In this document: one piece after another, positions 3,143-62,805 of the stretch
Numbering within the stretch: the first letter of the stretch is position 1
Layout of the letters: each line of letters starts with the position of its first letter
Origin: Epithemia pelagica
Taxonomy: Eukaryota; Protista; Bacillariophyta
Length of the DNA: 64,000 nt
Assembly (NCBI GenBank): GCA_946965045.2
Contig: OX337234.1
Location: 496,001-560,000 of the forward strand
Direction: 5' to 3'
The notes under the pieces: generated by a model
What the model was told of the DNA's origin: nothing
Database searches by the model: none
What the model saw: the letters and a program-made list of their open reading frames with translations, nothing else
Position numbers and translations under genes: made by a program

Positions 3143-3325
3143 TTGTTGCCTCTCGGTCCCTTGTAACTTGTTGTCCTCTCATAATCTACAACAACAGGAA
3201 CAAGTCTCTCTTGTCCATCAGTGCTTCCTTCAATTGTTGCCTCTCGGTCCCTTGTAACTTGTTGTCCTCTCATAATCTACAACAACAGCAACAAGTCTCT
3301 CTTGTCCATCAGTGCTTCCTTCAAT
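3143..3325 (+). repeat. Tandem duplication of a 91-bp unit just upstream of the transposase ATG
   Basis: TTGTTGCCTCTCGGTCCC...CTTCCTTCAAT at 3143 and 3234, near-identical. Confidence 0.9.
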
Positions 3326-3337
3326 CATTATATCATC

Positions 3338-30573: not shown

Positions 30574-31017
30574 GCCTCCCAGCGCATCGCGATGATCGAG
30601 GATCTCGACGGCGACGAAGCCGTCGGCGCCTACTGGGGCGAGGTCAACACCACAGTGCACAAGGGGCTTGGCGTTGACGGTGCCATCACCAACGGCCTGA
30701 TGCGTGACCTCGGTGACCTGGCGCCGGATTTCCAGGTGCTCGCGGCCGGCATCGGCCCCAGTCACGCCTTCGTGCACGTGGTCGAGATCGACGGCCCGGT
30801 CAGCCTGTTCGGCATGCGTGTGGAGCCCGGTGAGTTCCTCCATGCCGACCGCCACGGCGCCGTTGTCGTCCCCGACGACGTGTTGCCCGAACTGCCGCAG
30901 GCGATTGCCAGGATGCAGGCCAGCGAGCGGCTGATCCTGGAGCCGGCCCGCCAGCCCGGATTCGACTACGAGGCCTTCGAAGCGGCCTGGGCGGCCTTTG
31001 AAAAGGCACGGGTGTAA
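30574..31017 (+). pseudogene. Bacterial RraA/HMG-aldolase-family gene, 3' fragment
   Basis: Abrupt GC rise; AMIEDLDG..AVGAYWGEVNTTVHKGLGVDGAITNGLMRDL..GEFLHADRHGAVVVP. Confidence 0.8.
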
Positions 31018-39469: not shown

Positions 39470-39603
39470 CGTCGCTCATGTCGTCGACTTCATTGAACGC
39501 GCTCGGCAAACCCTGGTCCCAGTTCGTTGATCCGCTCCAGCATGTCGACATGGGCGGGCCGGAAGCGGGAGGTGTCGTAGTAGTCGCGAAAGGTCAGCTT
39601 CAT
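39470..39603 (-). pseudogene. 5' fragment of the bacterial gene downstream of the NicX-like gene (possibly acyl-CoA dehydrogenase-like)
   Basis: ATG overlaps the upstream stop (ATGA); MKLTFRDYYDTSRFRPAHVDMLERINELGPGFAER; homology boundary approximate. Confidence 0.4.
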
Positions 39604-43558: not shown

Positions 43559-46500
43559 TCATCAACGAGGGAATCAACATGACGTGCACATTCCATGGAC
43601 GGATATGCCACGCTTCGCTCATCATGTATATGGCGACATCGGCTAGACAGGGAGGGGGCTCCCAGATGAAGATTCCATCAGTATCCTGAGGAGCAGTGAA
43701 CCAATCTTGCGGTTCCATTCTCAGTGCTTGATTGAAACGGTCACCCATGATGCGCCTGAGCAGTGTCGATGTTCCTTGAGGCTGTCTTTCACCTGCCGAT
43801 AGATGTAACGGCACATAATCCAACATGCTCTGTCCCCTCAGCACGCCACTGGTGAGGTCGGATCGGGACAGTCCGTCACTGCCCTGTGCTATCATCCGCT
43901 TGCCCGCCACCCAGATTACGTGTATGAAGGCGTTGCCCTTCATAAGGATTTTATGAAGGCGAAACATCAGATGCAACACCTCAGGGGATCTCGCCGATCC
44001 TCGATAGAACGCCGCTTCGGCATGAATATTATCTGTGAAGATAAAATACTCTGTTTCAGCGTTGACTCGCCCTTGGCGGTCAAGTTCCTCGATCTTCATG
44101 ACGATGTTTGCTAATTCTCTGAAATTGGAAGAGGATCCCACCATCGCCGACGCCTCCCAGGCCCCAAAATCTACTTCAATTTCTTTGTCGCCTGGAGTCC
44201 ATCCCGACATTCCGAATCCTGCTCCAGAGGCATCGCCAAAGTAGTAACGAGCTTTGGCGACAGCTTTGTCCGGTCTAAGAAATCGTTCGGGAGGTTCTGT
44301 TGCTGAAGTGAGCGATTCCATCGCTTCAATATCAAAGATCATTCGATCGACCAACTGAACGCGTGCTGGGGCGTCTTTGTAACTGCCACTATATCGCAAA
44401 TCCGACGCATGGTTATTCACCTTCCATCCGTCATCATCGCGATCCGGCCGCCAGATGTTGATCGTTGCATACACTCCATTCAGATACAAGAGCAACGTTG
44501 GATACGCTCGACCCACGTGGTTGATGAAGCCGGCAACCTCCTCCAGTACTTTTCGTCGCACTGTACCTTTTGGAGACGCGTTCCCGACTTCGTCGATTTC
44601 GCTTCGCAGTCTTCTTATTTCGCTCTGGGTTTTTTCCCACTTTTCTTGTGTGACCGAAATGAAAGGCCGGTCGGGGGCCGTCCCGCACACTACTCCAGCC
44701 CAGGCTCCGGGACGTTGAGTTTGCTCCCGTCTTTTTCGCGCCGCGTCTTGGACGCCATAGAAAGAAGCGGTTTTCGCAATAACCGAACTTATACGCCAGG
44801 CATCATTCGACGTCGGTCCCGTTCCCCGTAGATCGTCTACGTAATCGTGGGCATCCGCTGCTAAAGCTCCGTTTTGCCTTCTCTTCGCGATCCAAGGTTC
44901 ACCCGGGCGGTATTCGACAGTGCCAGGTAAGTTGATTACCACTCGGTACCATCTAAACACGTTCGCTCGCTTTTTCCGATCGCCTAACATGAGCCGTTTC
45001 AAGCGACGAGTTTGCTGGACAGTCGTGAAGGGTGAAGGACTCTGACCCATAGCACACCTCGTCCATCCTTCGATCCATAACTCGCCGTTCTCCTTCCTAC
45101 CATAGATAGGCGTAAAATCCATGGCGCTAAATTCTTGTAACTCCGGATGGATCCAGAAGTTTAAGAACATTTCCCCGTAGTCGTTGTCTACGCACCAGTA
45201 GCCGGTGTCGAGAGTACGAACTAAAACTTCTGCGTCCGGTAACGGGAACCACGGAGCGTACAAGCAGTCATTAAGACCACTCTTGGTTCCATCGTATACC
45301 ATCCGCACGTCGTCTTCACCCTTTGGGACCGCAAAATAATTCATTGTGGCTTTCCAGTTGCCGTCCTCTCCGACATACCGTTTTGCGCGCACATCATCTA
45401 TCTTTTCCGCAATTTGCTTTATAGTGTTGTCATCACCAAGGCCACCTTGGCGAACGATTTGTTGTTTTGGCATGCCAGTCCAACAAGGCGGGACGCCAAT
45501 CGCCAGATCTCGCATGTACTCGCTTGGCCACCGCCAAAAGAATACACTCGACCCTGCGGGCCACGCCCAAAAAGTGGCCTCACAAGCATGTCGACACGCT
45601 TCTTTGCCTCGCTGCTCTATGAGCTTCCACCAGTTTGGTTCTTCGGCCTTCAGTTGCCGATTGTTCTGCCGCCACCAAGTCAGCCATGACCGAACCACAT
45701 TGTGTCTCCATCTTGATAGCATCGCTTCTCGTACTAGATTGAACGCTCGACGGTGCCGATCTGACAAACTATCTTGGTCTAACAGGAAACGGATTCGATC
45801 ATCCCACAAATCAGTGGGTACGGCCGCCTTGTCATGTTTGACTGCTTTTTCGGAGGCAGTGGTTGTCAAAGCCAGCTTGATGTAGCCCGACATGCGCTCC
45901 TCTTCCTCGATTTTCGACTCTTCACATTCCGATGAAAGGAGTCCGTTAAGACTTTGGGACACTTCTTCGCTGTCTTTGAGAATATGAATCCCTTTTGGTG
46001 TATCCGCCGGTAATTTGACGTCGTTCGCGGTGTCCGATAGCGTTTGCATCAGCCAAGCTCGCAAACACATCCCTAAGCATGACACGACCTTGATTGGCTT
46101 GGTGCATGCTATGACGACGGCTTTGAGTGTGGCGTCATTCCAACTTTGCACTACCGACACCGGCAAATCAATACACGAAGACAACTCTTTGAGAGTAAGT
46201 TGTCTCATCACGCGGACATTCTGTCCATACACTGTTGGTAAGACGAGTCGCTTCTTTTGAAACATAGCTACATCTTTCCATGGTAGCAGATCCTTGTTTG
46301 GATCCAACAAATCGTCTTCCAGACTCGATCTCACTCGTTTCCCAGTGACAGTGCGATCCACGAGATTTATCAGATGGTTTGGAGCCCCAATAATGAATCT
46401 TGCATCGAATACAGCGGAAGCATCATTGGGTTTACTTCCGTGGTGGCTCGATTTTGCGAACCAGTGAGAGCGGCCCCGCCAATCCGTCACACCTCCTGTT

Positions 46501-46976
46501 TCGGCATGAGTGAGACCCTGGGAAAGCGTCCACCATCCTTCCGGTGGCCTTCCCCGCAAACCCCGATCCGACAGAACCAGTTGAGTCCTTCCAAACCACA
46601 GAGGATGAGATGCTTTGGGCGGACGACACGTGCCTTCAAAAACGACTACGTCAACTGAGTCCTCATAATACGGAGTGTAGTCTTCCATGCTGCAAGGTGA
46701 CTCCGGATCAATCCAGGTCACCTTTGTTCCCGACGCGACCAAGTGGGTGCAGCAATTTCTCAAGCGTTTCGACGTGACCAACCAATTAATTCTGCATCCC
46801 ATCAAGTTTTCAGGCAAGAATAGCCAACTCGAAAGACCCGTAGAAACAATACCCATAGAGAACGGTGCTTCTTCGATAGGTACCTTGCGACTGATCCATG
46901 CTGAACATGTTTCCAACTTTTCCCGTTTTTCTCGGCCGAACCTTTTGGGCTCAACACTTCTCTCCCTCTTTCGCAT
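43224..46976 (-). CDS. Pol: reverse transcriptase + RNase H, with N-terminal extension
   Basis: NYFAVPKG..VRMVYDG, DYGEMFLNF, MGQSPSP, YVDDLR (RT); FGDASGAGFG, SSNFRELAN, FTDN, HVIWVAG..QGSDGLSR (RNase H). Confidence 0.9.
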   Translation of the reverse strand: MRKRERSVEPKRFGREKREKLETCSAWISRKVPIEEAPFSMGIVSTGLSSWLFLPENLMGCRINWLVTSKRLRNCCTHLVASGTKVTWIDPESPCSMEDYTPYYEDSVDVVVFEGTCRPPKASHPLWFGRTQLVLSDRGLRGRPPEGWWTLSQGLTHAETGGVTDWRGRSHWFAKSSHHGSKPNDASAVFDARFIIGAPNHLINLVDRTVTGKRVRSSLEDDLLDPNKDLLPWKDVAMFQKKRLVLPTVYGQNVRVMRQLTLKELSSCIDLPVSVVQSWNDATLKAVVIACTKPIKVVSCLGMCLRAWLMQTLSDTANDVKLPADTPKGIHILKDSEEVSQSLNGLLSSECEESKIEEEERMSGYIKLALTTTASEKAVKHDKAAVPTDLWDDRIRFLLDQDSLSDRHRRAFNLVREAMLSRWRHNVVRSWLTWWRQNNRQLKAEEPNWWKLIEQRGKEACRHACEATFWAWPAGSSVFFWRWPSEYMRDLAIGVPPCWTGMPKQQIVRQGGLGDDNTIKQIAEKIDDVRAKRYVGEDGNWKATMNYFAVPKGEDDVRMVYDGTKSGLNDCLYAPWFPLPDAEVLVRTLDTGYWCVDNDYGEMFLNFWIHPELQEFSAMDFTPIYGRKENGELWIEGWTRCAMGQSPSPFTTVQQTRRLKRLMLGDRKKRANVFRWYRVVINLPGTVEYRPGEPWIAKRRQNGALAADAHDYVDDLRGTGPTSNDAWRISSVIAKTASFYGVQDAARKRREQTQRPGAWAGVVCGTAPDRPFISVTQEKWEKTQSEIRRLRSEIDEVGNASPKGTVRRKVLEEVAGFINHVGRAYPTLLLYLNGVYATINIWRPDRDDDGWKVNNHASDLRYSGSYKDAPARVQLVDRMIFDIEAMESLTSATEPPERFLRPDKAVAKARYYFGDASGAGFGMSGWTPGDKEIEVDFGAWEASAMVGSSSNFRELANIVMKIEELDRQGRVNAETEYFIFTDNIHAEAAFYRGSARSPEVLHLMFRLHKILMKGNAFIHVIWVAGKRMIAQGSDGLSRSDLTSGVLRGQSMLDYVPLHLSAGERQPQGTSTLLRRIMGDRFNQALRMEPQDWFTAPQDTDGIFIWEPPPCLADVAIYMMSEAWHIRPWNVHVMLIPSLMSGKWRKMLFKISDVICVLPFGEQWWPRESEFEPLTLAFIFPLLHRVPWRVKFEPFFRDQGHYVRTLHRQSIPFAGHHLCQLWARAWTLGTVPFGVPPSLLRGDSEARSVSS

Positions 46977-47030
46977 GGCTGAAATTTCTTGTTCATCGAT
47001 ATCGTAAGAGGTCTTTTCTTCATTTCCGTC

Positions 47031-49583
47031 TCACGATGGTGATTCGGCCCCTTCAGGTTTTGCTTTTCCCTTCTTGGATGGGAGTCTTGACTGCATATTT
47101 TTTATTTGACTTTCCAGCGCATCTAACTTGCGTTTTGCTTGACCCGCCTCAGTCACCGCCTTTTGTACGTCTTTTATCAGCGGATCGACATCGTCGTGGA
47201 AGCTCACTACATCTAACAAGAAGTGAGTTAGCATTGGTCCGACTTTCGGATGGTTCTTGAATTCATGATCTAAGAACTCGCGCTGCAGCCTGTTTGCTTG
47301 TAACACAGCCCACAGAAGATCATGTGCACGTTCAGGACTCGTCGCTTGTTTTATTGTGATTTCGCTGCACACCCTACGTGGCTGGTTTATCACTTCGAAA
47401 ACGATCCGGACAATGTTCTGAACCAAATCCCACCGACGGACCTCGCTCAGGTTCGTGTCAGAGCCATACTCCTCCACCTGGTCTTTCATATAGATCAGGA
47501 GAGTATCAAGGAAGTGTTTGGCGTCTGTCAACAAAGCGTGAGCTACTGACTTGGCTCCTTGGGACATTTCGGAAGTCCGAATCTCTTTCAGGACGGCCGA
47601 ATGTTTGTCATTCAGCAATTTCCGAATTTCACTGGCCGCTCCCGAGTCACGGGCACCGGATCCCTTGAACCGTTGATATGTATCGAGTTTGCACAATTTG
47701 CGTAGGTTTGTGCGAGCCTGGTCTGGTGTTCCTGCCATGACTGTAGGAGCCATGAGTTGGAACGAGTACAATGCCTTTTGATCACTAGGTCTTTCCATCG
47801 ACGACCTGCTTCCTTTGTATTGCACCTCAATGTTATCTGTATAACTTTGAGATACCGTCGTGGCCATTTCAATGAATGACATTGCGTCAACAAACTTTAA
47901 CACTTCTCCTGAAACGTTGTTGGAGATGACAAACGCCTTTACCTGAGCGGGGGAGCTAAACTGAACTCCCTCAATCTCCACAGCTTGCATCTCCGATCTT
48001 GCTTCTAGATCCGTTATGCGTATCTGCTGAGTTTTCTCTTGTTCTTCCATCTTGCTCAGCAGACGTTTCATTTCGACTATTTCCTGAGCGTCAACTCCCG
48101 AACCTGCCAAGTGAGATGTACTAGGTCGTCCTTGTTGAAATACCGAGTGCAAAGTGTCGGTCAAGTACCGAATATGATTCTCTAACTCGACACGTCCACC
48201 TCCCTGGAAGTAATCATTAGCATCAATGATAGTGTTCTCCACCTTTTTCAACTCGTGCCAGATCAAGTTCTTGACTTCCTCAGGTAGAAGCTTGAGCATC
48301 TTGCGGTCCTGCTCAAAGTCGTCGGATTTTCGTTTGGCATCGTCCAATTCGGTGGTTAGAGCCTGGATCTTCTGGTGCAAGTCCATCATTTCGATGCGCC
48401 AATCCTTTGACTCCTCAGAGTGGTTGTCTGGCTGTTGACTCGAGTCTTGCAGTTCTGACAAAGCTTGCCACACTGAAACCGTACCTGCCCCAGCAGGGGG
48501 CGCTCCCAATAGGCCACTCATTACGTTTACTTTGTTCACCAGAGTATTCAACAGCTTGTTTTGCTCGAGCTGTCGAGCGCGAAGTGTGACAAGTTGATTC
48601 GACGAGGCTTGAGCGACTTGCCCTAAGAGCGTCGTATTATGAACCAAGATCTCTCTCACGTTTGTGGTGTCAGCGGAAACCGGCTGCAAATCGAGGGGTT
48701 CCATCGGCGAGGGTAATTCCACGTCTTCCAACCGCAGCCCTTTCGCCGGAGTATGAGCGACGTGAACTGCCTTGTTCTTGAGAGCAGCCATGGTCGCTAA
48801 CTCCAAATCATCATCTTCGGCGACGGACCATGAATCCGCTTCGATCCTCGCATCCACTTCGCCAATGGCTTCCAGGGCCGCTCCAATGTTTTTCTTCGAG
48901 GGCTCAAAATCGGTCTGAGTCTCACTTTTAATCAAAGAAAACAAAGATGTCCAGACCAACACAGGTTGAATCTTAGCCGACAACAACTCTTCGACCTTGG
49001 ATAAGTCAAGGGAAGCAGCGTCCAAATAAGGATCTTGGAACGCTTGCGAAGGAGCATCTTCTTTTCCTTGCTGGGCCTTGCTCATGGGGGCGTTAATGAA
49101 CAGGACCTTGGACAATCCTTTATTCTTGAGAGAGTCTAGGAAAGAAGATCCTTTCTTGTGGTGTGATTTTGTTTTGCAATAGATCTTAAGGAGAGTACAA
49201 AATTTTCCCGACGATCCTACCGTGCTGCCGCACAACTCATGCTCATTCACATCAACGCAACGCACAGACACAAGATTGTTAGAAATAGGGTGCTCACCAT
49301 GAAGTTGAGTGTTCTCCGGCTTTGAAGGGAACCCCCCAGGAAAACGATCCGAACCAAAAGTCTCTGCGATCGACGCGACTGCTCCAGGTTTGCGTCCAGC
49401 TGGCTTGGTGTCTTCATCCATCGGCGTTCCAGATTCCGAGAGATTCTTCCCGGAAACACCCCGAGTTTTCAAGTACCAAGCCTCGCTTTCCCGATCAGCT
49501 TTGGCCCAAGCCGTGGCCAGTCGTTCTTGCGAAGAGAGAGGCGGCCCGCCGCCCTGAGTGTTCGCGTCTTCACGTTCAGTCAA
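47031..49583 (-). CDS. Gag-like ORF1 of the retroelement
   Basis: 850-aa ORF in first position; CGSTVGSSGKFC..C..KSH cluster and coiled-coil segments; assigned mainly by position. Confidence 0.7.
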   Translation of the reverse strand: MTEREDANTQGGGPPLSSQERLATAWAKADRESEAWYLKTRGVSGKNLSESGTPMDEDTKPAGRKPGAVASIAETFGSDRFPGGFPSKPENTQLHGEHPISNNLVSVRCVDVNEHELCGSTVGSSGKFCTLLKIYCKTKSHHKKGSSFLDSLKNKGLSKVLFINAPMSKAQQGKEDAPSQAFQDPYLDAASLDLSKVEELLSAKIQPVLVWTSLFSLIKSETQTDFEPSKKNIGAALEAIGEVDARIEADSWSVAEDDDLELATMAALKNKAVHVAHTPAKGLRLEDVELPSPMEPLDLQPVSADTTNVREILVHNTTLLGQVAQASSNQLVTLRARQLEQNKLLNTLVNKVNVMSGLLGAPPAGAGTVSVWQALSELQDSSQQPDNHSEESKDWRIEMMDLHQKIQALTTELDDAKRKSDDFEQDRKMLKLLPEEVKNLIWHELKKVENTIIDANDYFQGGGRVELENHIRYLTDTLHSVFQQGRPSTSHLAGSGVDAQEIVEMKRLLSKMEEQEKTQQIRITDLEARSEMQAVEIEGVQFSSPAQVKAFVISNNVSGEVLKFVDAMSFIEMATTVSQSYTDNIEVQYKGSRSSMERPSDQKALYSFQLMAPTVMAGTPDQARTNLRKLCKLDTYQRFKGSGARDSGAASEIRKLLNDKHSAVLKEIRTSEMSQGAKSVAHALLTDAKHFLDTLLIYMKDQVEEYGSDTNLSEVRRWDLVQNIVRIVFEVINQPRRVCSEITIKQATSPERAHDLLWAVLQANRLQREFLDHEFKNHPKVGPMLTHFLLDVVSFHDDVDPLIKDVQKAVTEAGQAKRKLDALESQIKNMQSRLPSKKGKAKPEGAESPS

Positions 49584-50553
49584 GCCAGCATACTACCCGA
49601 CGTCCGAAGCACGAGAACTGGTGGAACTCCTGCCCGCAGCGACACTCCCCGCACGATCACGGGAAAAGAAGAGCGGAGGAGGAGGAGGTGCAAGTGCACC
49701 TCCCCCGGGAGAAGCCACGGGCGTCGCGCTAGAGTCCAATCCGCCACGATCGACACCAAACACCGTACCAACTCCTTCTTGAAAATCCCCCCCATGTCCG
49801 ACAAAACCGGGGCGAGGCCCGACAAAGTCGACACAGGGACCCGCAACGTAGACGTTCCAACTCCCACACCGAGGCCCGACGAAAGAGTCAACCCGTCCTC
49901 CGAGGGAGGACGCGAAGACGCAGCGGGAGGGCGAGGACCCAGAGACACGCGCTCGCGAGGAGCAGACGAAAAACGCGACGAAAAGCCAGACGACGACATG
50001 GGAGCGAGGCAAGGAACGACTACAAAAAACTAAAACTCAGAGCAATACAAACTCAATAGATGCTGGACCTGCAGGGAAGAGCACCTTCTCGAATAGATCA
50101 ATCTGAAGACAGTGTGACCAAGACGATTGTCCCAATCCGTGGTTCAGAACTCTTGGTGAATTCTCACACACGTACTCGGATCTTTCTTCAATCGTCTGAA
50201 TCTTGTAGTGTAGGTGAAGGTCTGTGAACTAAGTGACTGACACCGTCCGTTGTCGCCACCGGATTAGCTTGAGCACATGTAGAAACTGGCGATCCATTTT
50301 CCCTCGGGGATTTCCTGAAGCAAGGTTATCTCCAAAAAACTTTACTACACGGTTTAGTAAAGCAGCATGATGCAGATTGGGCAATGGATCGTCAACTCGG
50401 GCAGGGGACAAAGTCTGCAGGGACGCAACAGGCGGTAGAGGTCGCCCGGGCAGGGGCATGCCACGCAAAGCCATTCCATTGCAGGCCTTCGCAACCCGCT
50501 TGCGGGCGGCCAATTTTGCTTGACGCAGTGACGGTAGGTGGCAAATTGAAGCG

Positions 50554-51294
50554 ATGACCACGCCGGAACTGACCTCACAAGACCTGTTGCTGTTTGATGA
50601 AACGCTTCCCTTTGATGCGGATGGCCCGGCAACGTTCCGCAGCGAATGCCCGCCGGACAAGAAGGTCAAGGTCGAGGATCTGTTCAAGTTTTCACGCGGC
50701 CGAGGCGACCTGCAGGTTTCCTTTGTTTTCGGCTGCCTGGCGCTGTTTTTCCTGGCGTTTTTCTGGAGCCAGACCGGCTGGGAAGACCGCAAGCTTCCGG
50801 ACAATTTTGGCAGCTACATCGCCTATCAGTTCGGACTGGTCGACATCGAGGGGCGTGTGACGCGGCTTGGCCGCATCCTCAAGCAGTCATGGATCGCGCC
50901 GCTTCTTTGCCTCGCCGTTTTTGTACCTTCAGCGCTGTGGAACCTGCAATCGTCCTGGAAGGAACATCGCTGGCGCAAGCGTTTCCTGCTGCCGACCAGC
51001 GCCTATTTCGAACTGACCAAATATGCCGCGGCGCTGGAGTTCGTCGCCTATTTCATCGGCTACACATTGCTTGTGCCGGTTCTTGGCTACCTCGTTTCAA
51101 CGCTGCTGCTGGGCACCTACCTGACCTGGCGCCTGGGCTATCGCAGCCGCGCGTGGCTGCTGCGCGGCCTGGTTGCCAGTTTTGCGGTCGTCATCGTGTT
51201 CCGCACCTTCCTGCAGATCAAGACCCCGGTCAGCATCTGGCTCTACGATCAGCTGCCCGCGGCGCTGCGCGCTTTCATGTTGACGTATTTCTGA
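50554..51294 (+). CDS. tctB: Bacterial tripartite tricarboxylate transporter small subunit (TctB-like)
   Basis: Multi-TM protein ending LVPVLGYLVSTLLLG..WRLGYR..VVIVFRTFLQIKTP, directly upstream of tctA; frame intact. Confidence 0.75.
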   Translation: MTTPELTSQDLLLFDETLPFDADGPATFRSECPPDKKVKVEDLFKFSRGRGDLQVSFVFGCLALFFLAFFWSQTGWEDRKLPDNFGSYIAYQFGLVDIEGRVTRLGRILKQSWIAPLLCLAVFVPSALWNLQSSWKEHRWRKRFLLPTSAYFELTKYAAALEFVAYFIGYTLLVPVLGYLVSTLLLGTYLTWRLGYRSRAWLLRGLVASFAVVIVFRTFLQIKTPVSIWLYDQLPAALRAFMLTYF

Positions 51295-51304
51295 GGGGGA
51301 AGGC

Positions 51305-52801
51305 GTGGAGGCATTTGTAACCGGACTGGCAAGCTTGATGGACCCGGCGGTGCTGGTGGCAATCCTGATCGGCTCCGTCGGCGGGCTCATCATCGGCGCC
51401 GTGCCCGGCATCGGGCCGGCCATCGCCATTGCCATCCTGCTGCCGGCAACGGTGTTTCTCGACGATCTTGTCAGCCTGGTGCTGCTGCTTGGCGTCTATG
51501 GCTCATCCATGTATGGCGGCGCGATCCCGGCCATCCTGATCAACACGCCCGGCACGCCGGTCAACGCGCTGACCACCTATGACGGTTATGCCATGACCCG
51601 GCGGGGGGAGGCGTCGCGCGCCCTGTCCCTGGCCTATTCGGCCTCGTTCTTCGGCGGATTCTTCTCGATTTCCATGGCGCTGATCGCGCTGTTCGTTTTC
51701 GGCCCCTACCTGCGTGACCTGGGCGCCCTGTTCGGCCAGCGCGACATCCTGATGGCGGCGATCCTCGGCGGGGTGCTGTTGATCGCGGCCCACCGCCAGA
51801 CCATGGGGATCGCCGCCATGCTGTTCGGATTCGGTTTCCTGATCGCCATCATCGGCAAGCAGTCCTCCCGCAAGGTGGATCGCTACACCTTCGACATCGA
51901 GTATCTTTACGCCGGCTTCAACCTGATCGTCGTGATCGTTGGCATCCTTGCACTCAGCCAGGCGCTCTTCCTGATGATCGGCAAGGATGACGACCCGCCC
52001 GAGGCACGCATCACCGGCGGGCTGTTGAGCGGATTCCGGGAGCTGGCCAGCAAGCGACTGATCGCCGTTCTGTCCGCCGCCTACGGAACGATCATGGGCA
52101 TCATTCCGGGTGTCGGAGAGTTCGTGGCCCAGTTCTTCAGCTATTCCACCGCGCGGTCACTGTCGAAGAATCCGGCCCGTTTCGGCCATGGTTCACCCGA
52201 GGGGCTGGTGGCGTCCGAGACCGCCAACAACGCGGTACCGTCCGCGGCCATGATCCCGCTGCTTGCACTGGGGGTGCCCGGCGAGGCGCTCACCGCCATG
52301 ATGATGGTGGTCTTCTTCGATGCCGGCATCAAGCCCGGGCCGGATGTGTTTGAAAACAATCCGGACTTCCTGTTCAGCCTGTTCACCGCAATGCTGATCA
52401 TCAACGTCCTGGTGCTGCTGACACTGCTGGTATCGACAAAGTATATTGCCCGCATGATCTACATACCCAACCGCATCCTGGGCGCCTTCATCATGATCTT
52501 GTCCTTTGTCGGGGTCTATTCGATCCGCAACAGCCTGACCGACTGTATTTTCGCGGTGCTGTTCGGGTTCATCGGCCTGGTGCTGCGGCGCCTCAACTGG
52601 CCGCTGGTGCCGATCGTCTAGGGGCTTGTGCTCGGATCCATTATCGTCGAACGTCTGACGGCCGGGGCAGGACAGATCAAATCCGCGGTCGATTTTGTCA
52701 ATCGGCCGGTTTCCGGAACGCTTTTTGTGGTGATCCTGTTGGTCACGGGATACATCATCTGGTCGTCGGTCAGGAACCGGCGCACGGAATATCAACAATG
52801 A
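51305..52801 (+). pseudogene. tctA: Bacterial TctA permease with premature stop
   Basis: GLIIGAVPGIGP..GGAIPAILINTPGTP..ASETANNA..IPLLALGVPG; TAG at 52619-52621 interrupts PLVPIV*GLVLG and the frame continues to TGA at 52799-52801. Confidence 0.9.
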
Positions 52802-52976
52802 CCAAACGATCATGGGAGGAACCAATGAAAAAACTTGCAATGGCGGCCGCGCTGGCCGCCACCGTGGCCGTCTCCGGCGCCATGCCGGCGGCCGCTGAAT
52901 ACCCCGAATCGCCGGTCCAGTTCGTGGTGCCGTTCCCGCCGGGGGATTTCGAGGACATCCTGACCCGCATGATCGC

Positions 52977-55900
52977 TAGGGTCTTCAAACTTAGGTAAAT
53001 GAAATTTTTGCTTAACTTGCTATGAAATTTAGGCTAAGTTTAGGTTTTGAAGTTTAGGTAGTTTAGGTGGCTATGGAATACGGCTATGGAGTCTCATTTT
53101 TTTCAATACATAGAAATCGAACCAAACAAGTCATCATCACAATGATCCACAACTTGTTCATTCGTTGCTTTATGGACAGTGGATCTTACCTTCATTAAAT
53201 ACCGTAAGTTCAGCCTAGCTCGCAGACAGACTTCCGCCTTGTCTTGCCCAAGATTACTGCGCAACTTACTCCAAACGTTGTTTTTGAGTGGCTTGGCAAC
53301 TCGCTCGACAGAGATAGAGCCAGTCGAACGAACCGAAAGAAGTGGTTCAATCACAAGATCGTACAACTTACTTGGAGGAGCAATGCTAAAAAACTCCAGC
53401 CTCCCTTGGTGGCCACCTGTGGTACTCACCCACTGACTCACCATTTGGATCGTGAGTTCGCGCTCTTCCTGGAATCGATCAGAAGGTGGACGTGGGCTCT
53501 CTGTGGGGAAGAGATCAATCCACTTCCCTGTGTGACCAAGATAGGACCTGAACTCCTGATCCACAATCAACCTGATGTCCCTTGTGTCCGGAGCTTCGAC
53601 CCTTCCCCACACAGTGGGACGCATATTGGGTGGCTCGACAGGTCCAGCATTCGGTGGTGGGGGTGGAGGTGGTTCCTGTGCAGGAATCACAAAGAACTCA
53701 ATTGCATCCTGCATGCAACGAGCAATTGATGGGTGAATGATAGGTCGCTTGGGGATTCTGGACCTGAAGGGATCCACGAGAAAAGCCCAGATTTGGTACT
53801 TGTCTAAGAGACCAACTTTCCGTCCAGGTGGTTCCGATCCATCATAGTTGAACCGATTGTCGCAGAACTCAACAATGGAGTTCCGTGCCCCACGGAGATT
53901 GAAGATTGCATCAATGGATCTGCTGCCACTTGCTGTTCCTGAACCCAATACACCATTCAACTCGTTGCGCATGGCAACAATCACGGGGTAGTACGCGGAG
54001 ATTGGAAAGTCATCGTCCGACACAAGCTTTGTTGCATGTTCAATCACAGCATAAATCTTGGCAACAACTTCCACCTTAGCCCATAGATCACGTGTAACTA
54101 GTCGAAGGGTTGCATCAATCTTTTCCTTACGCCTCTGTGTTCGCGAGTTGTAGTATTGCTCAAACATGGGATGGTGCCCGTTGCACCATTCATAAAAAGG
54201 CTTTTGGTTCAGAACCGACTCCAAGGTCATACCAACCTTGTTGAACCTTGTCTCAGAGTAGTTGGAGACATTGCCACAGGTTGCTGGTAGATCGCCAGTT
54301 CGGACTAGCTCATGTCGAATCCCATCTACATTGTCTGTGGTTGAAAACTCCATCAGCATGGCAATGTCTGACAGGAGTGAATCAATACATGGGACCTTGG
54401 CCACATCCTTTGCCAACAGGTCAATACAATGAGCACAGTCACGATTGCTCAGTATGTTGGGCTCTTTGGGGTTGTTGGACTTGTAGATTGCACATGCCTC
54501 TTTCACAACTTTCGTGGCAGCGTTGTCTGTTGCAACACAGCACAAGGGAGAATTGTACTCACGTCGCGTCTTCACCATGAAATCAACCATGTCTTGCGTC
54601 TCAGCCTCTGTTGCATGGGCGAGGTTGCGAAGACGAGAGGCCTTTGCAAATAAAGTAACACTACCTTTCGCAATGGTGGAGAGAATGGTGCTGGTACCGT
54701 TGCAGGTGACACCATCAGCTGCAATGGTCATGCCTCCTGGAATCTTTTGCATCATGGTGTTCAGCTCTAGTTGACACTGTTTGTCAATCACCATGACGTA
54801 GCGCTTGTAGATTGTGTCTGGGTGGTGGGGCACAAACTTCATAATACCCTTACCAAACCGTGTGACGAGTTCGTCTTGGACGAACGGGTCCAACAGACGT
54901 TGCATGGGCTCGAAGCGTGCGAGGGTTGTTTCGACAGACTTCATGATGAGACGATTGGCCATCTGTTCTGTCAGAACAGTACCAAAACTCTGTATGGACG
55001 ACTGCTGGTGTTTCTTGCGACCTGCTTTGTCTCCTGGTTTGGACCTGGCCTTGTCTCGTAAACTTGTTGACAGCGAGGATACAGAACTTGATGCACCTGA
55101 AGACTCTGATGCCATCACCCTCTCTTGGCTGAGTGGACCACCAACAATCAAACCCAATTGTTTCTTGGCACGCTTACTAGCTTGAGTTTGGCCATCACAG
55201 AGTTGGCGAATTTCAGTAGGAGCGCTCTTGCATTTCTGAATGATGTGATCAGATGCAACACTTGCATTGAAAGTCTTCCAATTTTTGTACATCTTGCAAT
55301 GGATGCACACAATCTTCAAGTATCCTTCTCGATCCGGGTCAGGGGAAATCTCAAACTGCTCTCGGATGTATTGGTTGGCTTTCTTTTTGGGTGGCTTTCG
55401 CTTATTTTGCGACAACGTCGTTGAGTCGTTGGTCGTAGTATCGTCTTCATCGTTGGCGTCACTTCGTCCCGTAGCCACTTCGAATGGTTCATCCTGCTCC
55501 TCGTCGCCTTCCGTCGTCGTCGTCGAAACCATGGCCGTCGTCGTGCCTTCTTGTTGTTGCTGTTCCTCGTCTTGTCCTTGTCGTTGTTGTGTTGCAGCTG
55601 TCAACGGTGACAGATCTTGGAACGTCACAACAGTAGTATTCGGCTGCTCGTCAGCAGTACTTTCGTTCTCCATTGCAACTTCTGCTGATCCTGTCTCCAA
55701 CAAATGTGATCGGAGTTTGTTTGATTGCTGAATCGTTTGTTGTTGTTCATCGTTCATGTGTCATCATTGTTGTTGTTCTTGCAAAGATCCCAAAGATATC
55801 AGCCTGTCAAGATCTCATGCCAACTGCCAACATCAACGGTTGGATACCTACGGTACCTATGCCTAGTTAACAAAAGGGCCTACCTAAACTTCGGTGGACA

Positions 55901-55983
55901 TGGCGTTGAGTCTTGTAAGTTACGAAAACTTAGGCCCCTAAATTTAGGCGGAGAAACTTCGGCTAAGAAACTTGAAGACCCTA
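52977..55983 (-). mobile_element. Complete hAT DNA transposon, 3007 bp
   Basis: 12-bp perfect TIRs TAGGGTCTTCAA; 8-bp TSD ATGATCGC (52969-52976, 55984-55991); subterminal TTAGG/CCTAA repeats. Confidence 0.95.
53103..55757 (-). CDS. hAT transposase (BED finger, DUF659-like core), intact 884-aa ORF
   Basis: CIHC..DHIIQKC, IAADG, NRDCAHCIDLLAKD, SETRFN, SVERV. Confidence 0.9.
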   Translation of the reverse strand: MNDEQQQTIQQSNKLRSHLLETGSAEVAMENESTADEQPNTTVVTFQDLSPLTAATQQRQGQDEEQQQQEGTTTAMVSTTTTEGDEEQDEPFEVATGRSDANDEDDTTTNDSTTLSQNKRKPPKKKANQYIREQFEISPDPDREGYLKIVCIHCKMYKNWKTFNASVASDHIIQKCKSAPTEIRQLCDGQTQASKRAKKQLGLIVGGPLSQERVMASESSGASSSVSSLSTSLRDKARSKPGDKAGRKKHQQSSIQSFGTVLTEQMANRLIMKSVETTLARFEPMQRLLDPFVQDELVTRFGKGIMKFVPHHPDTIYKRYVMVIDKQCQLELNTMMQKIPGGMTIAADGVTCNGTSTILSTIAKGSVTLFAKASRLRNLAHATEAETQDMVDFMVKTRREYNSPLCCVATDNAATKVVKEACAIYKSNNPKEPNILSNRDCAHCIDLLAKDVAKVPCIDSLLSDIAMLMEFSTTDNVDGIRHELVRTGDLPATCGNVSNYSETRFNKVGMTLESVLNQKPFYEWCNGHHPMFEQYYNSRTQRRKEKIDATLRLVTRDLWAKVEVVAKIYAVIEHATKLVSDDDFPISAYYPVIVAMRNELNGVLGSGTASGSRSIDAIFNLRGARNSIVEFCDNRFNYDGSEPPGRKVGLLDKYQIWAFLVDPFRSRIPKRPIIHPSIARCMQDAIEFFVIPAQEPPPPPPPNAGPVEPPNMRPTVWGRVEAPDTRDIRLIVDQEFRSYLGHTGKWIDLFPTESPRPPSDRFQEERELTIQMVSQWVSTTGGHQGRLEFFSIAPPSKLYDLVIEPLLSVRSTGSISVERVAKPLKNNVWSKLRSNLGQDKAEVCLRARLNLRYLMKVRSTVHKATNEQVVDHCDDDLFGSISMY

Positions 55984-56836
55984 ATGATCGCGGCCAAGAT
56001 GCAGGAAATGACCGGCGTTTCGGCCTCGGTGGTCAACCGCCCGGGCGGCGGCGATGGACCGTTCCCGGGCGCCCTTGAGGTGCTGGACGGCCCCACCGAC
56101 GGTTCGGTTGTGGGTTCCTTTGTCATCGATGTGCCGATCGTCGGCCCGTTGATTGATATCGGCATGGAAAACGACAGTTTTACGCCGGTCGGCATTTTCC
56201 TGACCTACCCGTTCGTGCTCGCGGCCAAGGGTGACGCACCTTACAAGAACATGGCAGAACTCGCCGCCCACGCCCAGGACAATGACGTGGTTCTTGGTCA
56301 TTTCGGAGCCGGACTGACCCCGACACGCGCGACGTTCGTGGCGGCCAAGCTCATGGACTTCGAGTTTGCCGACGATTCGGCCTTTGACCTTCTGGACTGC
56401 AACTCGCTGTCCTCCGGTGATGCCGACGTCATTAACACGACCCTGGCGCTGATCGAACCGTGCCTCGGCGACGTGACAATCCTCGCCAATATCGGTTCGG
56501 AGCCGATCGGCAAGCTGCCCGGCGTGGAAACCCTGTCCTCGCAATCCGGCGCCAGCGATCTGGAGCTGTGGAACGGTCTCTTCGTGAAGAAGGGCACACC
56601 GCAGGAGGTGATCGACAAGCTCGCCGAAATCTCGGCCGCCACCATGGCCAGTGAGGAAGCACAGGAACTCATGAAGGCAACCGGCGCCCGGGTCTATTGG
56701 CAGGGCACGGAGGAATCCATTGCCCGCATCGAGGCCGACCGGGTCAAGAGCGCCGAAATGGACAAGATCATCGAAGAGTGATCGCCAACCCGCGGTGACC
56801 GCCCGGCGCGGTCACCGCTTCGTTCCGGGAAAATTC

Positions 56837-57049
56837 ATGCAGCGCATCAGACTTGGCATCTTGCAAACCAACCACGACAAGTCGGTGGAAGTCGGGGACG
56901 CCTTTCCCGACGATGCCCACCGGTTTCGCGACATGTTCGATGCACAGGAAGACCGCTTCCAGTATCGCATTTACATGACGATTGGCGGTGAGGTGCCGCA
57001 GGACTTGGATGAGCAGGATGCGTTCATGATCACCGGTAGCCCGCTGAGC
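56837..57049 (+). pseudogene. Bacterial class I glutamine amidotransferase-like gene, 5' fragment
   Basis: MQRIRLGILQTNHD..YMTIGGEVPQDLDEQDAFMITGSP, truncated after ITGS. Confidence 0.75.
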
Positions 57050-57274
57050 CGCCTTGCCACGTGACAATCCCGTGACACTGGTCCTGACACGGTTGCGGGC
57101 CGAGTCGTTCGGATTGGAGCACACTGCTTCGTCAGTTTTCCGGGGGCGTTGACATGCCGTCGAAGTCACTCCAGTTTGCCGAAGCTTTGCGCTGCAACCT
57201 TGCCGCCGTTCCCAGCAGCGAGCCCGCCGCTTTTGAACACGCCAGCAAGGTCATTTTCAGCCGACAGGTGTTGC

Positions 57275-58192
57275 TTGGACACAATCAGAAAATCCTCGAT
57301 CGCCGATCTTCTGCTGGTCGTTCTGACAGCCGTGATCTGGGGTTCATCATTTGTCGCAATCAAGGTGGCGGTGCCCGAAACCGGCCCCTACTGGCTGGCG
57401 ACCATCCGCGTCACCATCGGTTTCCTGGTCCTCTTGCCCTACGCGATATGGCGCGGCCTTGTATTTCCGAGAACGGCCAGGACCTGGCTCCTGCTGTTGT
57501 TGATGGCCGCTTTCAACGTTGTTGTCCCCTTTCTCCTCATCTCCTGGGCCGAACTGTTCATCGATGCCGGCGTCACCTCCCTGCTCATGGGGACAGGGCC
57601 TTTCCTGGCGCTGATCGGCAGCCACATATTCACCCACGATGACAAGCTTACACCGACCAAGGCGCTGGGCGTCCTTCTGGGTTTCCTGGGCGTTTTGACC
57701 ATTGTCGGGTTTGACGCCATTGCCGGGCTCGGGCGTTCCAACCTCGCGGCCCAGCTGGCCTGTTTTCTGGCATCCCTGTCCTATGTTGTCAGCGGCCTGC
57801 TGGTTCGCATGATCGATATTCCACCCGGCCGCCTTGCCTGCCTTGCGCTGGGCGTATCCAGCCTGGCCCTCATCGCCATCTCGTTGGTCGCCGACGGCCG
57901 GCCATCGTTTGACCTGTCGGCCAATGCGGCCTTGGCGCTGGTCTATCTCGGTTTGGTACCGACGGGTCTTGCCTACCTTCTGCGCTTTCACCTGATACGC
58001 AAGATCGGCTATTCCACTTTCGCAATCGGCTTCAATCTGATCCCTGTGTCCGGCATTGTTCTGGGCGTGCTGTTGCTCGGTGAAACCTTGTCATTGCATA
58101 TCATTCTTGCCCTGATGCTGGTCGTCTGTGGCCTGTTCGTGACCAGGCTCGGCAGCAAACCGCAAACCACGGGAACAACAGCCCATGACTGA
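57275..58192 (+). CDS. Bacterial DMT/EamA-family transporter, apparently intact
   Basis: LTAVIWGSSFVAIKVAV..PFLLISWAE..LGVLLGFLGV..LVYLG..TGLAYLL..GVLLLGETLS; probable TTG start at 57275. Confidence 0.9.
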   Translation: MDTIRKSSIADLLLVVLTAVIWGSSFVAIKVAVPETGPYWLATIRVTIGFLVLLPYAIWRGLVFPRTARTWLLLLLMAAFNVVVPFLLISWAELFIDAGVTSLLMGTGPFLALIGSHIFTHDDKLTPTKALGVLLGFLGVLTIVGFDAIAGLGRSNLAAQLACFLASLSYVVSGLLVRMIDIPPGRLACLALGVSSLALIAISLVADGRPSFDLSANAALALVYLGLVPTGLAYLLRFHLIRKIGYSTFAIGFNLIPVSGIVLGVLLLGETLSLHIILALMLVVCGLFVTRLGSKPQTTGTTAHD

Positions 58193-58810
58193 CACGTTGT
58201 CCGACGGCCGTTCCACCCAACGCCTGCCGCTCATCGATGTCGCAAGGGGTGGCGCACTGGTTGCGATGGCGATCTATCACTTCACGTGGGACCTGGAGTT
58301 CTTCGGCTACGTTGAACGGGGCACAACGGCCATCGGCGGCTGGAAACTCTTTGCCCGCCTGATTGCCGGCAGCTTCCTGTTTCTCGTTGGCGTCAGCCTG
58401 GTTCTCGGACATGGCAGGGGCATAAGGTGGAGGTCATTCGGCAAGCGGTTTGCCATGATCGCCGTGGCGGCGGGACTGATCACCCTCGCCACCTATTTTG
58501 CCACGCCGGATCGATTCATATTCTTCGGCATTCTTCACAACATCGCCGTCTCGAGCGTATTCGGCCTGTTGTTTGTCCGGTTGCCGGCCCCGATCAGCCT
58601 TTTGGTCGGACTGGTGATCCTGTTTTCCGGACCCTTCATCACCGGACCCGCTTTTGATCACAGCCTGCTGCTGTGGCTGGGGCTTTTCACCGTTCCCGTC
58701 ATGTCCAATGATTTTGTTCCGTTTTTCCCCTGGACCGGGTGCGTTCTGCTTGGCATCAGTGCGGCAAAACTGGCGACTGACCAGGGCATGGTCCCGCGTG
58801 TGGCTGACCT
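58185..58810 (+). pseudogene. Bacterial DUF1624 / heparan-alpha-glucosaminide N-acetyltransferase-like gene, 3'-truncated
   Basis: RLPLIDVARGGALVAMAIYHFTWDL..FLFLVGVSL..IFFGILHNI..DFVPFFPW; overlaps the EamA stop; end approximate. Confidence 0.85.
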
Positions 58811-59040
58811 CTATATGAACGTCTCTGTGCAATTCATCGTCGGTCGCTCTCTGCCCACGCCGGAGATGCTGCACCTGATCGCTGAGGCCTACGCCCGCGA
58901 GGTGATCTACCTCGAGGATGACGAGTGGTGGGATGCCAACTATCAGTACTTCGAGCAGCCCACCCAGGGCGAGGCCAAGGGCTACCTGATCGACTACAAC
59001 CACAAGCACACCATGATGAACGCTGTCCTGCCACATCACA
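58811..59040 (+). other. GC-rich coding-like fragment of unknown origin
   Basis: YMNVSVQFIVGRSLPTPEMLHLIAEAYAREVIYLEDDEWWDANYQYFEQPTQGEAKGYLIDYNHKHTMM; strong GC3 bias; not DUF1624-like. Confidence 0.4.
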
Positions 59041-61164
59041 GCGTGCAGCTAACTGAGCTTCTAAACTTGCTCGTTCTTGCTCGTAACGAGGAAGGATCGG
59101 ACCTACTAGCTAGTTTAAGAAAGTACGGTACGATTCTAATTATAATAACATGGTCGTTGATTGTTCAAGGCTGGAGACTAGGCAAGTCATCCTAAGCCAA
59201 CTAAAAGCTGATACAACGAGATGACGATTTCAACTGTGTTTCTAAAACTAAACATTCCATTCATGCAATTAAAAAGTCGCTTTCATCGTTGCATTCATCG
59301 TCATCATCACTTCCGTTGTACTCGTCGTCGTCGTCCAACGCACTTGGTTGTTAGACGAGCAAGACGCTCTGCATCACTTGGCGGGACCTTCGTCCGATGC
59401 CGTTGGTTCGGCAAAGAACACTCTCACGAGCCTTTCCGGAAACATTTTGTTGGTAGCATCGATGAAGGATGAGGTCATTAGGCCTACCCAAAGCGCTTTT
59501 TTCAGTCGGGCTGTGGCCGTCCCAAGGAACTGGAATCAGGAGGATCTGTTTGGTCCGCATCGAGACCCGGAACAGCTGCTGGCTATTTGCGATACAGATC
59601 TATGGCTGCGTGACACCATTGGCCTTCGATCCCTTTGGAACCAACAACGGGTCTTTGTCTATCGCAGTCCCACCCATCATGAACCCTTGCCCACGGAAGA
59701 ATATGTGAACATTGTGGCCCGGTTTCTTCGTGGGGTAGTGGGGAACAATGCTAACTCCACCGCCGTGCGAGTCGTTTTGGAATCCATTTGCCATGAAGAA
59801 GTCGACATGCAAGTATTGGTGTTGTAGGGGGAACTGGGAGAGAATGCTGCCTGTGTTATCATGACTATCTTTGCATGCTTACTTTTTGAGACTTTCTAGT
59901 CCCTGGTCTCCTTGATTCCTGTTTCGCAACTCTTGATCCTTAAACTCGTGAGTTTTATCTATACATTCTAATCTCTCTCGTCGCATTGGAATACCACATC
60001 ACTCCAGCTCAACTGGCTGGGACACACTAGCTCTGACAAACTAGGCTCTGTCAGACTCAAGGATGACCAGAGATCCTAAGCTGCATCAACAATTAAAGCA
60101 GGCTATCAACAACATGCGGCTTACATATCTATGACAGGTGACTGGCTCATCGTTTGGTGCCTTAATTAGAGGATATTCAAGTAGGAATGCTTCAACCACA
60201 TGAACCCAAAGAAAAGCCGGAGGCAGCGCTTGCTACCCACATTCGAACATGTATTAGCTAGCTAGGGGCTTGATTCTTACGGTAACGTTCAATTGTGCAC
60301 ATGCAGCAGACACGAGAAACGACTGGAATCACCCCTTTGATTCCTGTTGCTCATACTAGCTAGGCCGCCCTTTCACAGCCACTACGTTTCTGCGCGTTGA
60401 TTATTTGACTTCGAGTCCCAACTTTGTCCTTCAAGGAGTTCTTTTTGGGCTGCAATGTGTCTTCGCCAAGCCATATCTTTTTGCTCGGTTCACTTGGTGG
60501 TCAATGACTCTCGGATTGCTAACCTCCTCGGTATACGGTTGCTTCTATTGCGCTCGAGAGGATGGGAGAATGCAATAGCCACGCTCTCCTCAGGCAGAGC
60601 AACAAGAGTTACAGTAAGTTGTTTATTTTTCTTCCTTCCACTGTGGAACTAAAAAGTTAAGAGTCCAAGGGGCAAAGCTGGAAGCCCGAACCGTACCTCG
60701 TTTCTTTTAAGAGAGGTGGACCATCGTCAGACCACGACGATCCTAGCTATTCTAACTATAACTAGCAATTTTTTGAGGGTGGTTTTGCTGTGGCAGTCAT
60801 GATGATCACTTCCAACGTCGCATGGGCGTGGGCTCCCAATGAAATGCCTCGACCAATGAAAGAACTCAAGTTCTCGATGAAGTAAGGTGACGCATAAAGA
60901 CCAATCACAACGTCTCCGATGATGAAGCTCCAATAGAGGCTTGCAACGTAGGTGTAAGAGAAATGGAGCATATGAGTGCTTTAGATGATCTCTCCTTCAG
61001 CTGCTAGTGCAACTCGGAAACGACAAAGGCAATTTCTGGGTCCGTGTCGCTCAGCAAAACAAGACGACGAGCGAGGAGCCAGGTATGATCCTTGGTTGGT
61101 GTGCATGTCTGGGCAATGCAGGAGCAGCTGTCGTTGGCCACACTAGTGCTTCTATTGCCTTGCC

Positions 61165-61735
61165 CGTCCGCCAGGACCAGCCGGGCCTCGAAGCTGTCGT
61201 CACGCGGGGTCTTCAGCGTGGCAACGAGCTGCCAGTATTCCTCGCTGACGAAGCGCTCGATTTCGCTTTCCCGGTCACAGATGAGACGCAGTGCCACGGA
61301 CTGAACGCGGCCCGCGGAACGGGCGCCCGGCAGTTTGCGCCACAGGACGGGCGACAGGTTGAAGCCGACCAGATAGTCGAGCGCGCGGCGAGCGAGGTAG
61401 GCATCGACCAGCGGTTCGTCGATGTCGCGCGGATGGGCCATGGCGTCGAGCACGGCCTGTTTCGTGATGGCGTTGAACACCACCCGTTTGACCGGCTTGT
61501 CGTCCAGGACACCACGCTTCTTGCGCAGCACCTCCAGCACGTGCCAGGAAATCGCCTCACCCTCGCGGTCCGGGTCCGTGGCCAGGATCAGGCCATCCGA
61601 GTCCTTGACGGCATCACTTATTTCCTTGAGCCGCTTGTTGGAAGCGGTGTCGACCTGCCAGGTCATGTCGAAGTCTTCGTCCGGCTTTACCGATCCGTCC
61701 TTTGCCGGCAAATCACGGACATGGCCAAAGGACGC
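61165..61735 (-). pseudogene. topA: Internal fragment of bacterial DNA topoisomerase I
   Basis: ASFGHVRDLP..LATDPDREGEAISWH..RRALDYLVGFNLSPVLWRKLPGARSAGRVQSVALR..EEYW. Confidence 0.95.
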
Positions 61736-62187: not shown

Positions 62188-62805
62188 TCCGGAGCAGGCA
62201 ATCCCGAAAAGACTTCTGAGGCACTGAACGACTGGATTGCTGCTGGTGAGGCGAAATCCTGTGAAGATATGCCAGAGACGAAGGGTTTCACCGCGGTTTT
62301 GAGATCATGGCTCCGATCCAACCGTTCCGATGCCGCTGAAAAGGCTCACAGAGGCTTGCAACAAATGATGGACCTTGCTTCAACAGGGAGATTTCAATGC
62401 TTTCCTGACCGCTATTCCTTTTCAGTTGTGATCTCGGCCTATGCCAAGTCTAATTCCAAAAAGGCCGGGAAAAGAGCTCTTCAATTACTGGAGGAGCTTA
62501 AGAGTTTGTTTCGTGAGAAAAATGATCGAGCACTAGATCCGGATCTCTTCATGTATGTAGAGGTCCTGGTTGCGTGCTTGAGTTCGATGCAGATTCAGGA
62601 GGGGGAGGAAGCGATTCGTAATCTTTTTCGAGAGCTCTTATCGAAGGAGGCCTCTTTTTGGCAAGAGGCAGACATGGATGTTGTGCCTCGATGGTTGCGC
62701 AGATTGCGTCGCGCGTTTCAATCAAGCTGCTTCAAATATGACGAGTTGCTAGAGTTGGATTTGGAGCGAATCGAATCCATTGCGAAAAATGCTGTGCGCC
62801 GCTAA
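62188..62805 (+). pseudogene. PPR paralog, 3' part (continuation of 28517-30573)
   Basis: S.AGNPEKTSEALNDWIAAGE...LERIESIAKNAVRR* matches the copy-1 C-terminus, starting where the 5' part stopped. Confidence 0.9.

Follow-up and report, generated by a model that had tools for sequence, protein, structure and literature searches.

Contig OX337234.1 of the diatom Epithemia pelagica (assembly GCA_946965045.2) carries, between positions 496,001 and 560,000, a bacterial-type tctC gene that is split by a transposon of the hAT type, and this raises the question of whether the bacterial DNA resides in a chromosome of the alga or was joined to it only in the assembly. The 64,000-nucleotide stretch analysed is referred to here as the window, and coordinates are those of the window unless another sequence is named. 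Claims of bacterial DNA in protists are often undone by contamination. A host transposon with a clean target-site duplication in both haplotigs is about the strongest proof of integration that sequence alone can offer, and it also orders the events. The account that we favour, and consider very probable, is that a host hAT element inserted into tctC of recently acquired Roseobacter-group DNA in a nuclear chromosome.

The element and its target site

The hAT-type element occupies 52977..55983 on the minus strand, is 3007 bp in length and has a guanine plus cytosine (GC) content of 47.6%, compared to 60-62% in the flanks. It is bordered by a target-site duplication composed of the 8-bp sequence ATGATCGC, with a left copy at 52969..52976 and a right copy at 55984..55991 that is a perfect 8/8 match to it. 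Given the position of the inverted ends, an 8/8 flanking repeat has a chance probability of approximately 1.5e-5. The terminal inverted repeat TAGGGTCTTCAA begins with TAGGG and is located at 52977..52988 on the plus strand, which is the 3' end relative to the transposase gene. The second terminal inverted repeat (55972..55983, minus strand) is the reverse complement of TAGGGTCTTCAA with a 12/12 match, and a search of the 64-kb window with one mismatch allowed returned just two matches to this 12-mer, both at the element ends. Inside the inverted ends are two subterminal regions (52989..53095 and 55880..55971), and the repeated motifs AGTTTAGGT and AAATTTAGGC are found there in several copies within approximately 100 bp of each end, with none in the element interior. 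These motifs match hAT subterminal binding sites in their arrangement and are regarded as putative sites.

The interrupted tctC gene is bacterial-type and is encoded on the plus strand. Its 5' part (52825..52976) encodes a signal peptide and the start of the mature protein, and its 3' part (55992..56781, Pfam TctC 2.6e-13) is in frame with the 5' part after removal of the element. In silico excision of 52977-55991 restores a single open TctC frame of 313 aa from the ATG at 52825, or of 322 aa from the ATG at 52798. The original prediction had described a perfect 8-bp duplication with inverted repeats on both sides and a 313-aa TctC after excision of the element and one copy of the duplication; the coordinates and sequences were reproduced exactly, and the 313-aa product is obtained as a single frame.

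Directly upstream of tctC on the plus strand are a bacterial-type tctA gene (51305..52801, Pfam TctA 3e-116) and a tctB-like gene (50554..51294), for which the Pfam TctB match of 1e-4 is weak and below the cut-off. A TctA scan with one genome per species provided a comparison set of 80 bacterial loci, mostly from marine Rhodobacteraceae. The TctA protein is 91% identical to the best relatives found (Rhodobacteraceae HTCC2150 and Litoreibacter), and the best DNA match of the flanks to bacteria is 77-79%. Analysis of the window by blastn against the 80 loci showed matches in three blocks only, located at 39498-40594, 50549-52977 and 55977-57049. For every good relative, the left alignment ends at 52976 and the right alignment resumes at 55984, with an 8-base overlap in bacterial coordinates (for example 7664-7671 in loci L007 and L008). 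Because the alignments overlap by exactly 8 bases, the bacteria have the target once. The excised window forms one colinear 3430-bp match (77.4%) to the uninterrupted tctB-tctA-tctC of a Litoreibacter locus (L020), and by this similarity the flanks are identified as Roseobacter-group (Rhodobacteraceae) tctB-tctA-tctC DNA.

The tctA frame of this haplotype contains a TAG stop codon at 52619-52621 that shortens the 498-aa product to 438 aa. The codon is TTG in the alternative haplotig (L001), and position 52620 is A in one read set and T in another. This nonsense allele of the transferred gene is segregating.

The transposase and assignment to the hAT superfamily

The sole long open reading frame (ORF) of the element is an intronless transposase gene (53103..55757, minus strand) encoding a protein of 884 aa. 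An AlphaFold model built from an alignment of 82 sequences has a mean predicted local distance difference test (pLDDT) score of 80.5 and is confident at residues 121-204 and 253-870. The best 12 Foldseek matches to the model are all Hermes transposase (E 3.4e-9 to 1.5e-6), and the next match is above 5e-3. VIA-align superimposed model residues 277-856 on Hermes residues 116-609 with Z-scores of 17.2-19.9 over 394-408 aligned residues. The model features the Hermes-type architecture, an RNase-H-like core broken by a large all-helical insertion domain. The alignment takes in this helical insertion domain and lies approximately 10 Z units over any other fold; retroviral integrase cores reached 9.4 for the RNase-H part only, and P element transposase reached 8.7. 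Membership in the hAT superfamily is supported because the predicted fold matches Hermes (Z 17-20), with the 8-bp duplication and the TAGGG ends in agreement, and it is the modelled structure that settles the identity.

The protein also contains motifs of hAT type, namely ADGVT (D348), TDNAA (D411), RDCAHCIDL (D440-x-x-H443) and SVERVAK (E819). The candidate catalytic residues are D348, D411, E819 and the D440-x-x-H443 pair, and the family alignment shows little or no variation at D348, D411 and D440. The aligned-range offsets place E819 at Hermes E572 and D348 near Hermes D180. The acidic triad of Hermes is reported to consist of D180, D248 and E572 (numbering of Hickman et al. 2005). On the model, E819 and D348 may be the equivalents of the Hermes catalytic residues. 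Near the N-terminus is a putative BED-like zinc finger (C151, C154, H171 and C176) with the spacing C151-x2-C154 ... H171-x4-C176. All four residues are invariant across 16 relatives, and the surrounding residues 130-190 have pLDDT values of 95-97.

An exhaustive HMMER search identified 504 relatives of the transposase, 49 of them below 1e-30. Among 82 aligned relatives, DUF659 was found in six (best 2.4e-6), zf-BED in a single one (E 0.004) and Dimer_Tnp_hAT (PF05699) in 1/82 (7.9e-4). The neighbours returned by a protein language-model search are solely eukaryotic BED, DUF659, Ac-transposase or ZBED clusters, and the nearest Atlas clusters are 95-100% eukaryotic and belong to hAT, BED or Ac-type families. 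The TAGGG start of the ends fits the hAT YARNG rule, with TAGGGTCTTCAA identical in all copies examined, and the 8-bp duplication expected of hAT elements is found at three independent loci (ATGATCGC, CCTCCGCC and GTCGGAGT).

Several results weigh against assignment to hAT. The 884-aa protein has no Pfam match at E <=0.01, and at a loose threshold the best match is DUF659 with an E-value of 0.07. No Pfam hAT family reaches threshold on it, and the Pfam hAT C-terminal dimerisation domain (PF05699) was not matched up to E 10. Profiles of 16 and of 82 relatives searched against the PDB reached no transposase, Hermes included, and gave chance matches only. Neither published hAT target consensus, Ac-type or Buster-type, describes the three duplications, which therefore point to no subfamily, and the catalytic residues were assigned by motifs and aligned-range offsets rather than by residue-level superposition. 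The missing Pfam domains, the lack of a PDB relative by sequence profile and the off-consensus duplications would also suit an element from another superfamily with 8-bp duplications, such as P element, Zisupton or Merlin/IS1016-like elements. This alternative is very unlikely, however, as it has to contend with the Hermes similarity over approximately 400 residues including the helical insertion domain, with the YARNG-type ends, with BED-like C2HC residues that are invariant in the family, with the hAT-type RDCAHCIDL and SVERVAK motifs, and with relatives that bear DUF659 and Dimer_Tnp_hAT. The C-terminal helices of the model align structurally with Hermes as far as residue 609, so the failure to match PF05699 reflects sequence divergence and not a missing region. 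The element had been predicted to be an intact hAT. The open frame and the ends were found as described, and the word intact would cover these two features only; the hAT identity holds by structure, with no Pfam hAT domain at threshold.

Other copies of the element and their age

The hAT family is present in multiple copies. The 90%-identity protein cluster of the transposase contains 19 members, all from ENA assembly ERZ21939226. At least four further copies are located on contigs of 180-690 kb of this same assembly, where they adjoin eukaryotic genes that include a RING finger gene, a kinase, a pseudouridine synthase and a copia reverse transcriptase, and identity is 98.6-98.9% for these further copies and 98.5-98.9% when copies are compared with each other. 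The prediction of a host element would have been undermined by an absence of copies from eukaryotic contigs, and it is on such large contigs that the copies are found. Two of them are full-length with perfect 8-bp duplications, a 3005-bp copy on ctg1291l (CCTCCGCC) and a 3008-bp copy on ctg1293l (GTCGGAGT). The copy on ctg1314l (L002 2962-6779) contains an 811-bp nested insertion at element position 120 and has unmatched flanking octamers, and the copy on ctg1240l (L005 2957-5934) has lost its first 30 bp, including the inverted end.

In a comparison of five loci, each copy has 14-21 changes of its own, against only 9 sites that are shared, a star-like pattern that indicates a single burst. 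The tctC copy has 14 private changes and is 0.47% from the common source. The ratio of nonsynonymous to synonymous polymorphism (pN/pS) among the transposase copies is approximately 1 (0.5-1.9, from small counts), which is consistent with copies that drift neutrally and does not bear on whether the element is active.

The read contigs also contain two shortened forms of the element with internal deletions, with junctions from 54632 to 55099 (466 bases skipped) and from 53445 to 55875 (2429). These would be non-autonomous copies, as known for Ac/Ds. A sister hAT family in the same assembly has 54-58% protein identity to the present one; the member examined (L088 2672-5694, on ctg1337l) has subterminal DNA that is 76-81% similar to that of the element. 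Within the window itself, a much larger hAT-like ORF of 1323 aa (Dimer_Tnp_hAT 1e-5) is located at 3221-7192.

Haplotigs, read contigs and the possibility of a chimeric assembly

The window corresponds to ctg1302l (539 kb) of ERZ21939226, with 10,655 bases at 100% identity that include an identical element sequence. The alternative haplotig, ctg906l, has the same insertion and the same duplication and differs at 16/11,209 sites, three of which are in the element. The reads came from three runs of one organism, in which 85-89% of the words sampled were present, and it was assembled contigs and not raw reads that were aligned. A 2752-bp short-read contig aligned to 51300-53006, which extends 30 nt into the element, and by its length this contig should start at approximately 50255, near the edge of a 9.7-kb insert described below. 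A 6379-bp short-read contig aligned from 55955, 29 nt inside the element, to 57100, the end of the compared stretch. Judging from its length, it would continue at uniform depth to approximately 62.3 kb and would take in tctC, the EamA and HGSNAT genes, DNA of 47% GC and a topoisomerase fragment on the way. No contig in the three runs joins 52976 to 55992, and no contig with an uninterrupted tctC was found at >=90% likeness, although contigs hide rare variants. The depth of the element is approximately 5.7x that of the flanks, in agreement with the number of loci in the assembly, and loose contig ends at the element termini match the flanks of other copies. Had the bacterial DNA come from a contaminant, an uninterrupted tctC at bacterial coverage was the form to expect. 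Only the interrupted form was seen, at the depth of the neighbouring non-bacterial DNA.

Two points count against the weight given to these contigs. The junction contigs extend only 29-30 nt into the element, which is 1-2 below the 31-nt rule of the tool, and the runs may be the same data from which the assembly was built.

The explanation that these data address is an assembly chimera or contamination, in which DNA of a culture bacterium was misjoined to a diatom repeat with no integration. Roseobacter-group bacteria live in diatom cultures and problems from co-assembly have been documented (PMC7466962), the flanks retain a bacterial GC content, and a run of another organism (X6) has the bacterial flanks only, at low depth. 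A misjoin, however, cannot make an 8-bp duplication of a target that is single in bacteria. Two separately assembled haplotigs share the same junctions, with their 0.14% divergence spread over both element and flanks, and the 6.4-kb contig would by its length reach the 47% GC DNA past approximately 59.2 kb at a single depth. At >=90% likeness, none of the contigs shows tctC without the element, and the whole block breaks a host PPR gene. A chimera is thus extremely unlikely, and residence of the bacterial DNA in host chromatin, with which the insertion had been predicted to be consistent, is further supported by the second haplotig and by the PPR gene split around the block.

Short, low-depth pieces from run X6 (2020) align to 51300-52870 and 56339-57100 and match the bacterial flanks at 95-99% identity; the element is not represented in this run. 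This DNA is probably from a bacterium close to the donor.

Chromosomal context of the bacterial block

Among the typical eukaryotic genes of the window are two for PPR proteins and one each for an HMG-box protein and a patatin-like lipase, together with a further hAT. One PPR paralogue is intact (801 aa, 23129-25534), and it aligns to 29239-30576 through its residues 147-592 (87%) and to 62188-62802 through its residues 594-797 (83%). The two halves of the paralogue alignment stop at 30576 and resume at 62188, which indicates that a host PPR gene has been split by a block of 31.6 kb (30577-62187). The upstream half of the split PPR gene continues in frame into an RraA-like fragment (ORF residues 452-540).

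Within the block, the bacterial tct tract is broken by a 9.7-kb insert (40605-50282) and runs on across it, with L020 position 11871 at window position 40589 and L020 position 11854 at window position 50283. The tract totals approximately 4.85 kb. The insert contains three long ORFs of 572, 1250 and 850 aa, and none of them has a Pfam match at E <=0.1. The hAT element had been called a second, mechanistically independent insertion into the bacterial segment; the continuity of the tract across 40605-50282 is compatible with this.

In 7/7 relatives that have both tct and the 1.1-kb bacterial piece of 39498-40594, the piece is 3.5-4.2 kb away from tct and oppositely oriented; either the donor gene order differed or there was a rearrangement on entry. 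Downstream of tctC, genes for an EamA-type transporter and an HGSNAT_cat protein (57149-59195) overlap by 8 nt and have a GC content of 60%. Their nearest protein clusters are all bacterial and they are not colinear with the tct loci of the 80 relatives; this stretch is probably a separate bacterial fragment. At 61004-61711 on the minus strand is a fragment of a bacterial type IA topoisomerase (Toprim and the start of Topoisom_bac) in a patch of 61% GC, directly before the PPR gene resumes.

A further alternative is that the tct genes were functional and domesticated, and that the hAT disrupted them recently, with consequences for the phenotype, instead of landing in DNA that was dead by then. 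It can point to a tctC that is intact but for the insertion and to a full-length tctA (498 aa) on the alternative haplotig. It is exceedingly improbable given that the two haplotigs share an insertion older than their divergence (14 private changes compared to 3 between-haplotig differences), that the segment is intronless and unameliorated, that its neighbouring genes are truncated at 39498 and 57049, that a second insert of 9.7 kb is present, that one haplotype has a nonsense codon in tctA, and that a eukaryotic cell offers no evident role for a transporter dependent on a periplasmic binding protein.

The bacterial genes appear, then, to be out of use, and we infer the mechanism of transposition and the order of events under the favoured account, a host hAT inserting into chromosomal Roseobacter-group DNA, as follows. 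A Roseobacter-group piece with tctB, tctA and tctC would have integrated first into a nuclear chromosome, and the host hAT transposon would then have been cut and pasted into tctC. The transposase, with its BED-like finger and its Hermes-like RNase-H core with the all-helical insertion, would bind the subterminal repeats, the 12-bp ends would be joined to staggered cuts 8 bp apart, and gap repair would yield the ATGATCGC duplication. This insertion would have been part of one burst that left at least five near-identical copies, and it would be older than the haplotype split, with neutral drift since. The predicted order is entry of the bacterial DNA, the hAT burst at approximately 0.5% divergence, the haplotype split at approximately 0.14%, and decay including the tctA nonsense allele. 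Under this order the bacterial DNA was already part of a chromosome at the time of the hAT burst; it was most likely useless by then and has been decaying since.

A broader reading of the block is evenly balanced in our view. The 31.6-kb patchwork (30577-62187) would have landed at a single break in the host PPR gene as raw fragments of several bacterial loci, possibly from several donors, and would later have gathered host transposons, with the hAT time-stamping one piece.

Comparison with known systems

The novelty of the locus is modest, as hAT elements in diatoms and bacterial gene transfer to diatoms are both known. Diatom transposon superfamilies on record already include hAT, with Cyclotella cryptica as one example (PMC7466962). 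hAT is not a topic of the MULE preprint, and a literature search on the assembly accession found nothing. Transfer of DNA from bacteria to eukaryotes is covered in reviews (e.g. PMC3798261). The new findings are a divergent hAT family and, through its insertion, a clear time-stamp for bacterial DNA that arrived very recently and is apparently without function. The family is young, multi-copy and apparently autonomous, and its divergence is so high that Pfam-based annotation misses it. This is relevant wherever transposons of algal genomes are annotated, and the element might be put to use for transposon tagging in diatoms.

The element resembles Hermes of Musca domestica and Ac-type hAT elements in its 8-bp target-site duplication, its short perfect YARNG inverted ends and its short subterminal repeats. 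Like them, it encodes one transposase, in which a candidate BED-like finger at the N-terminus is followed by an RNase-H-like core with a large helical domain inserted into it and, towards the C-terminus, by the motif S-x-x-E-R. It differs in that the transposase shares only 11-14% sequence identity with Hermes, that D-G-V takes the place of the usual D-x-W following the first aspartate, and that the protein has a long disordered, acidic and Gln-rich N-terminus of approximately 120 residues. The host is also a diatom, and the duplications depart from the nTnnnnAn and nnnTAnnn consensus.

Bacterial-origin genes make up 3-5% of diatom genes, are expressed and lie within less than 2 GC points of native genes, and species-specific transfers in diatoms are closer to transposable elements (bioRxiv 10.1101/2020.01.24.918219). 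The present segment shares with these genes the presence of bacterial DNA in a nuclear genome. Those genes are expressed and selected, whereas the present segment is 13-15 GC points above its surroundings, is interrupted twice, has a nonsense allele and has no sign of use. If patchworks of this kind were common in the genome, the alga would be observed in the midst of an ongoing uptake of bacterial DNA from the phycosphere, most of it non-functional from the start, and the first steps behind the bacterial genes of diatoms would become observable and datable by transposon clocks.

A host transposon inside transferred bacterial DNA is the classical proof of integration in insects with nuclear Wolbachia inserts. 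The two cases are alike in that a host mobile element within the transferred DNA proves its chromosomal, mostly decaying state. The donor differs, being in the present case a free-living or phycosphere Roseobacter-group bacterium and not an intracellular symbiont, and the recipient is a unicellular alga whose small insert (approximately 4.9 kb) forms part of a multi-fragment patchwork.

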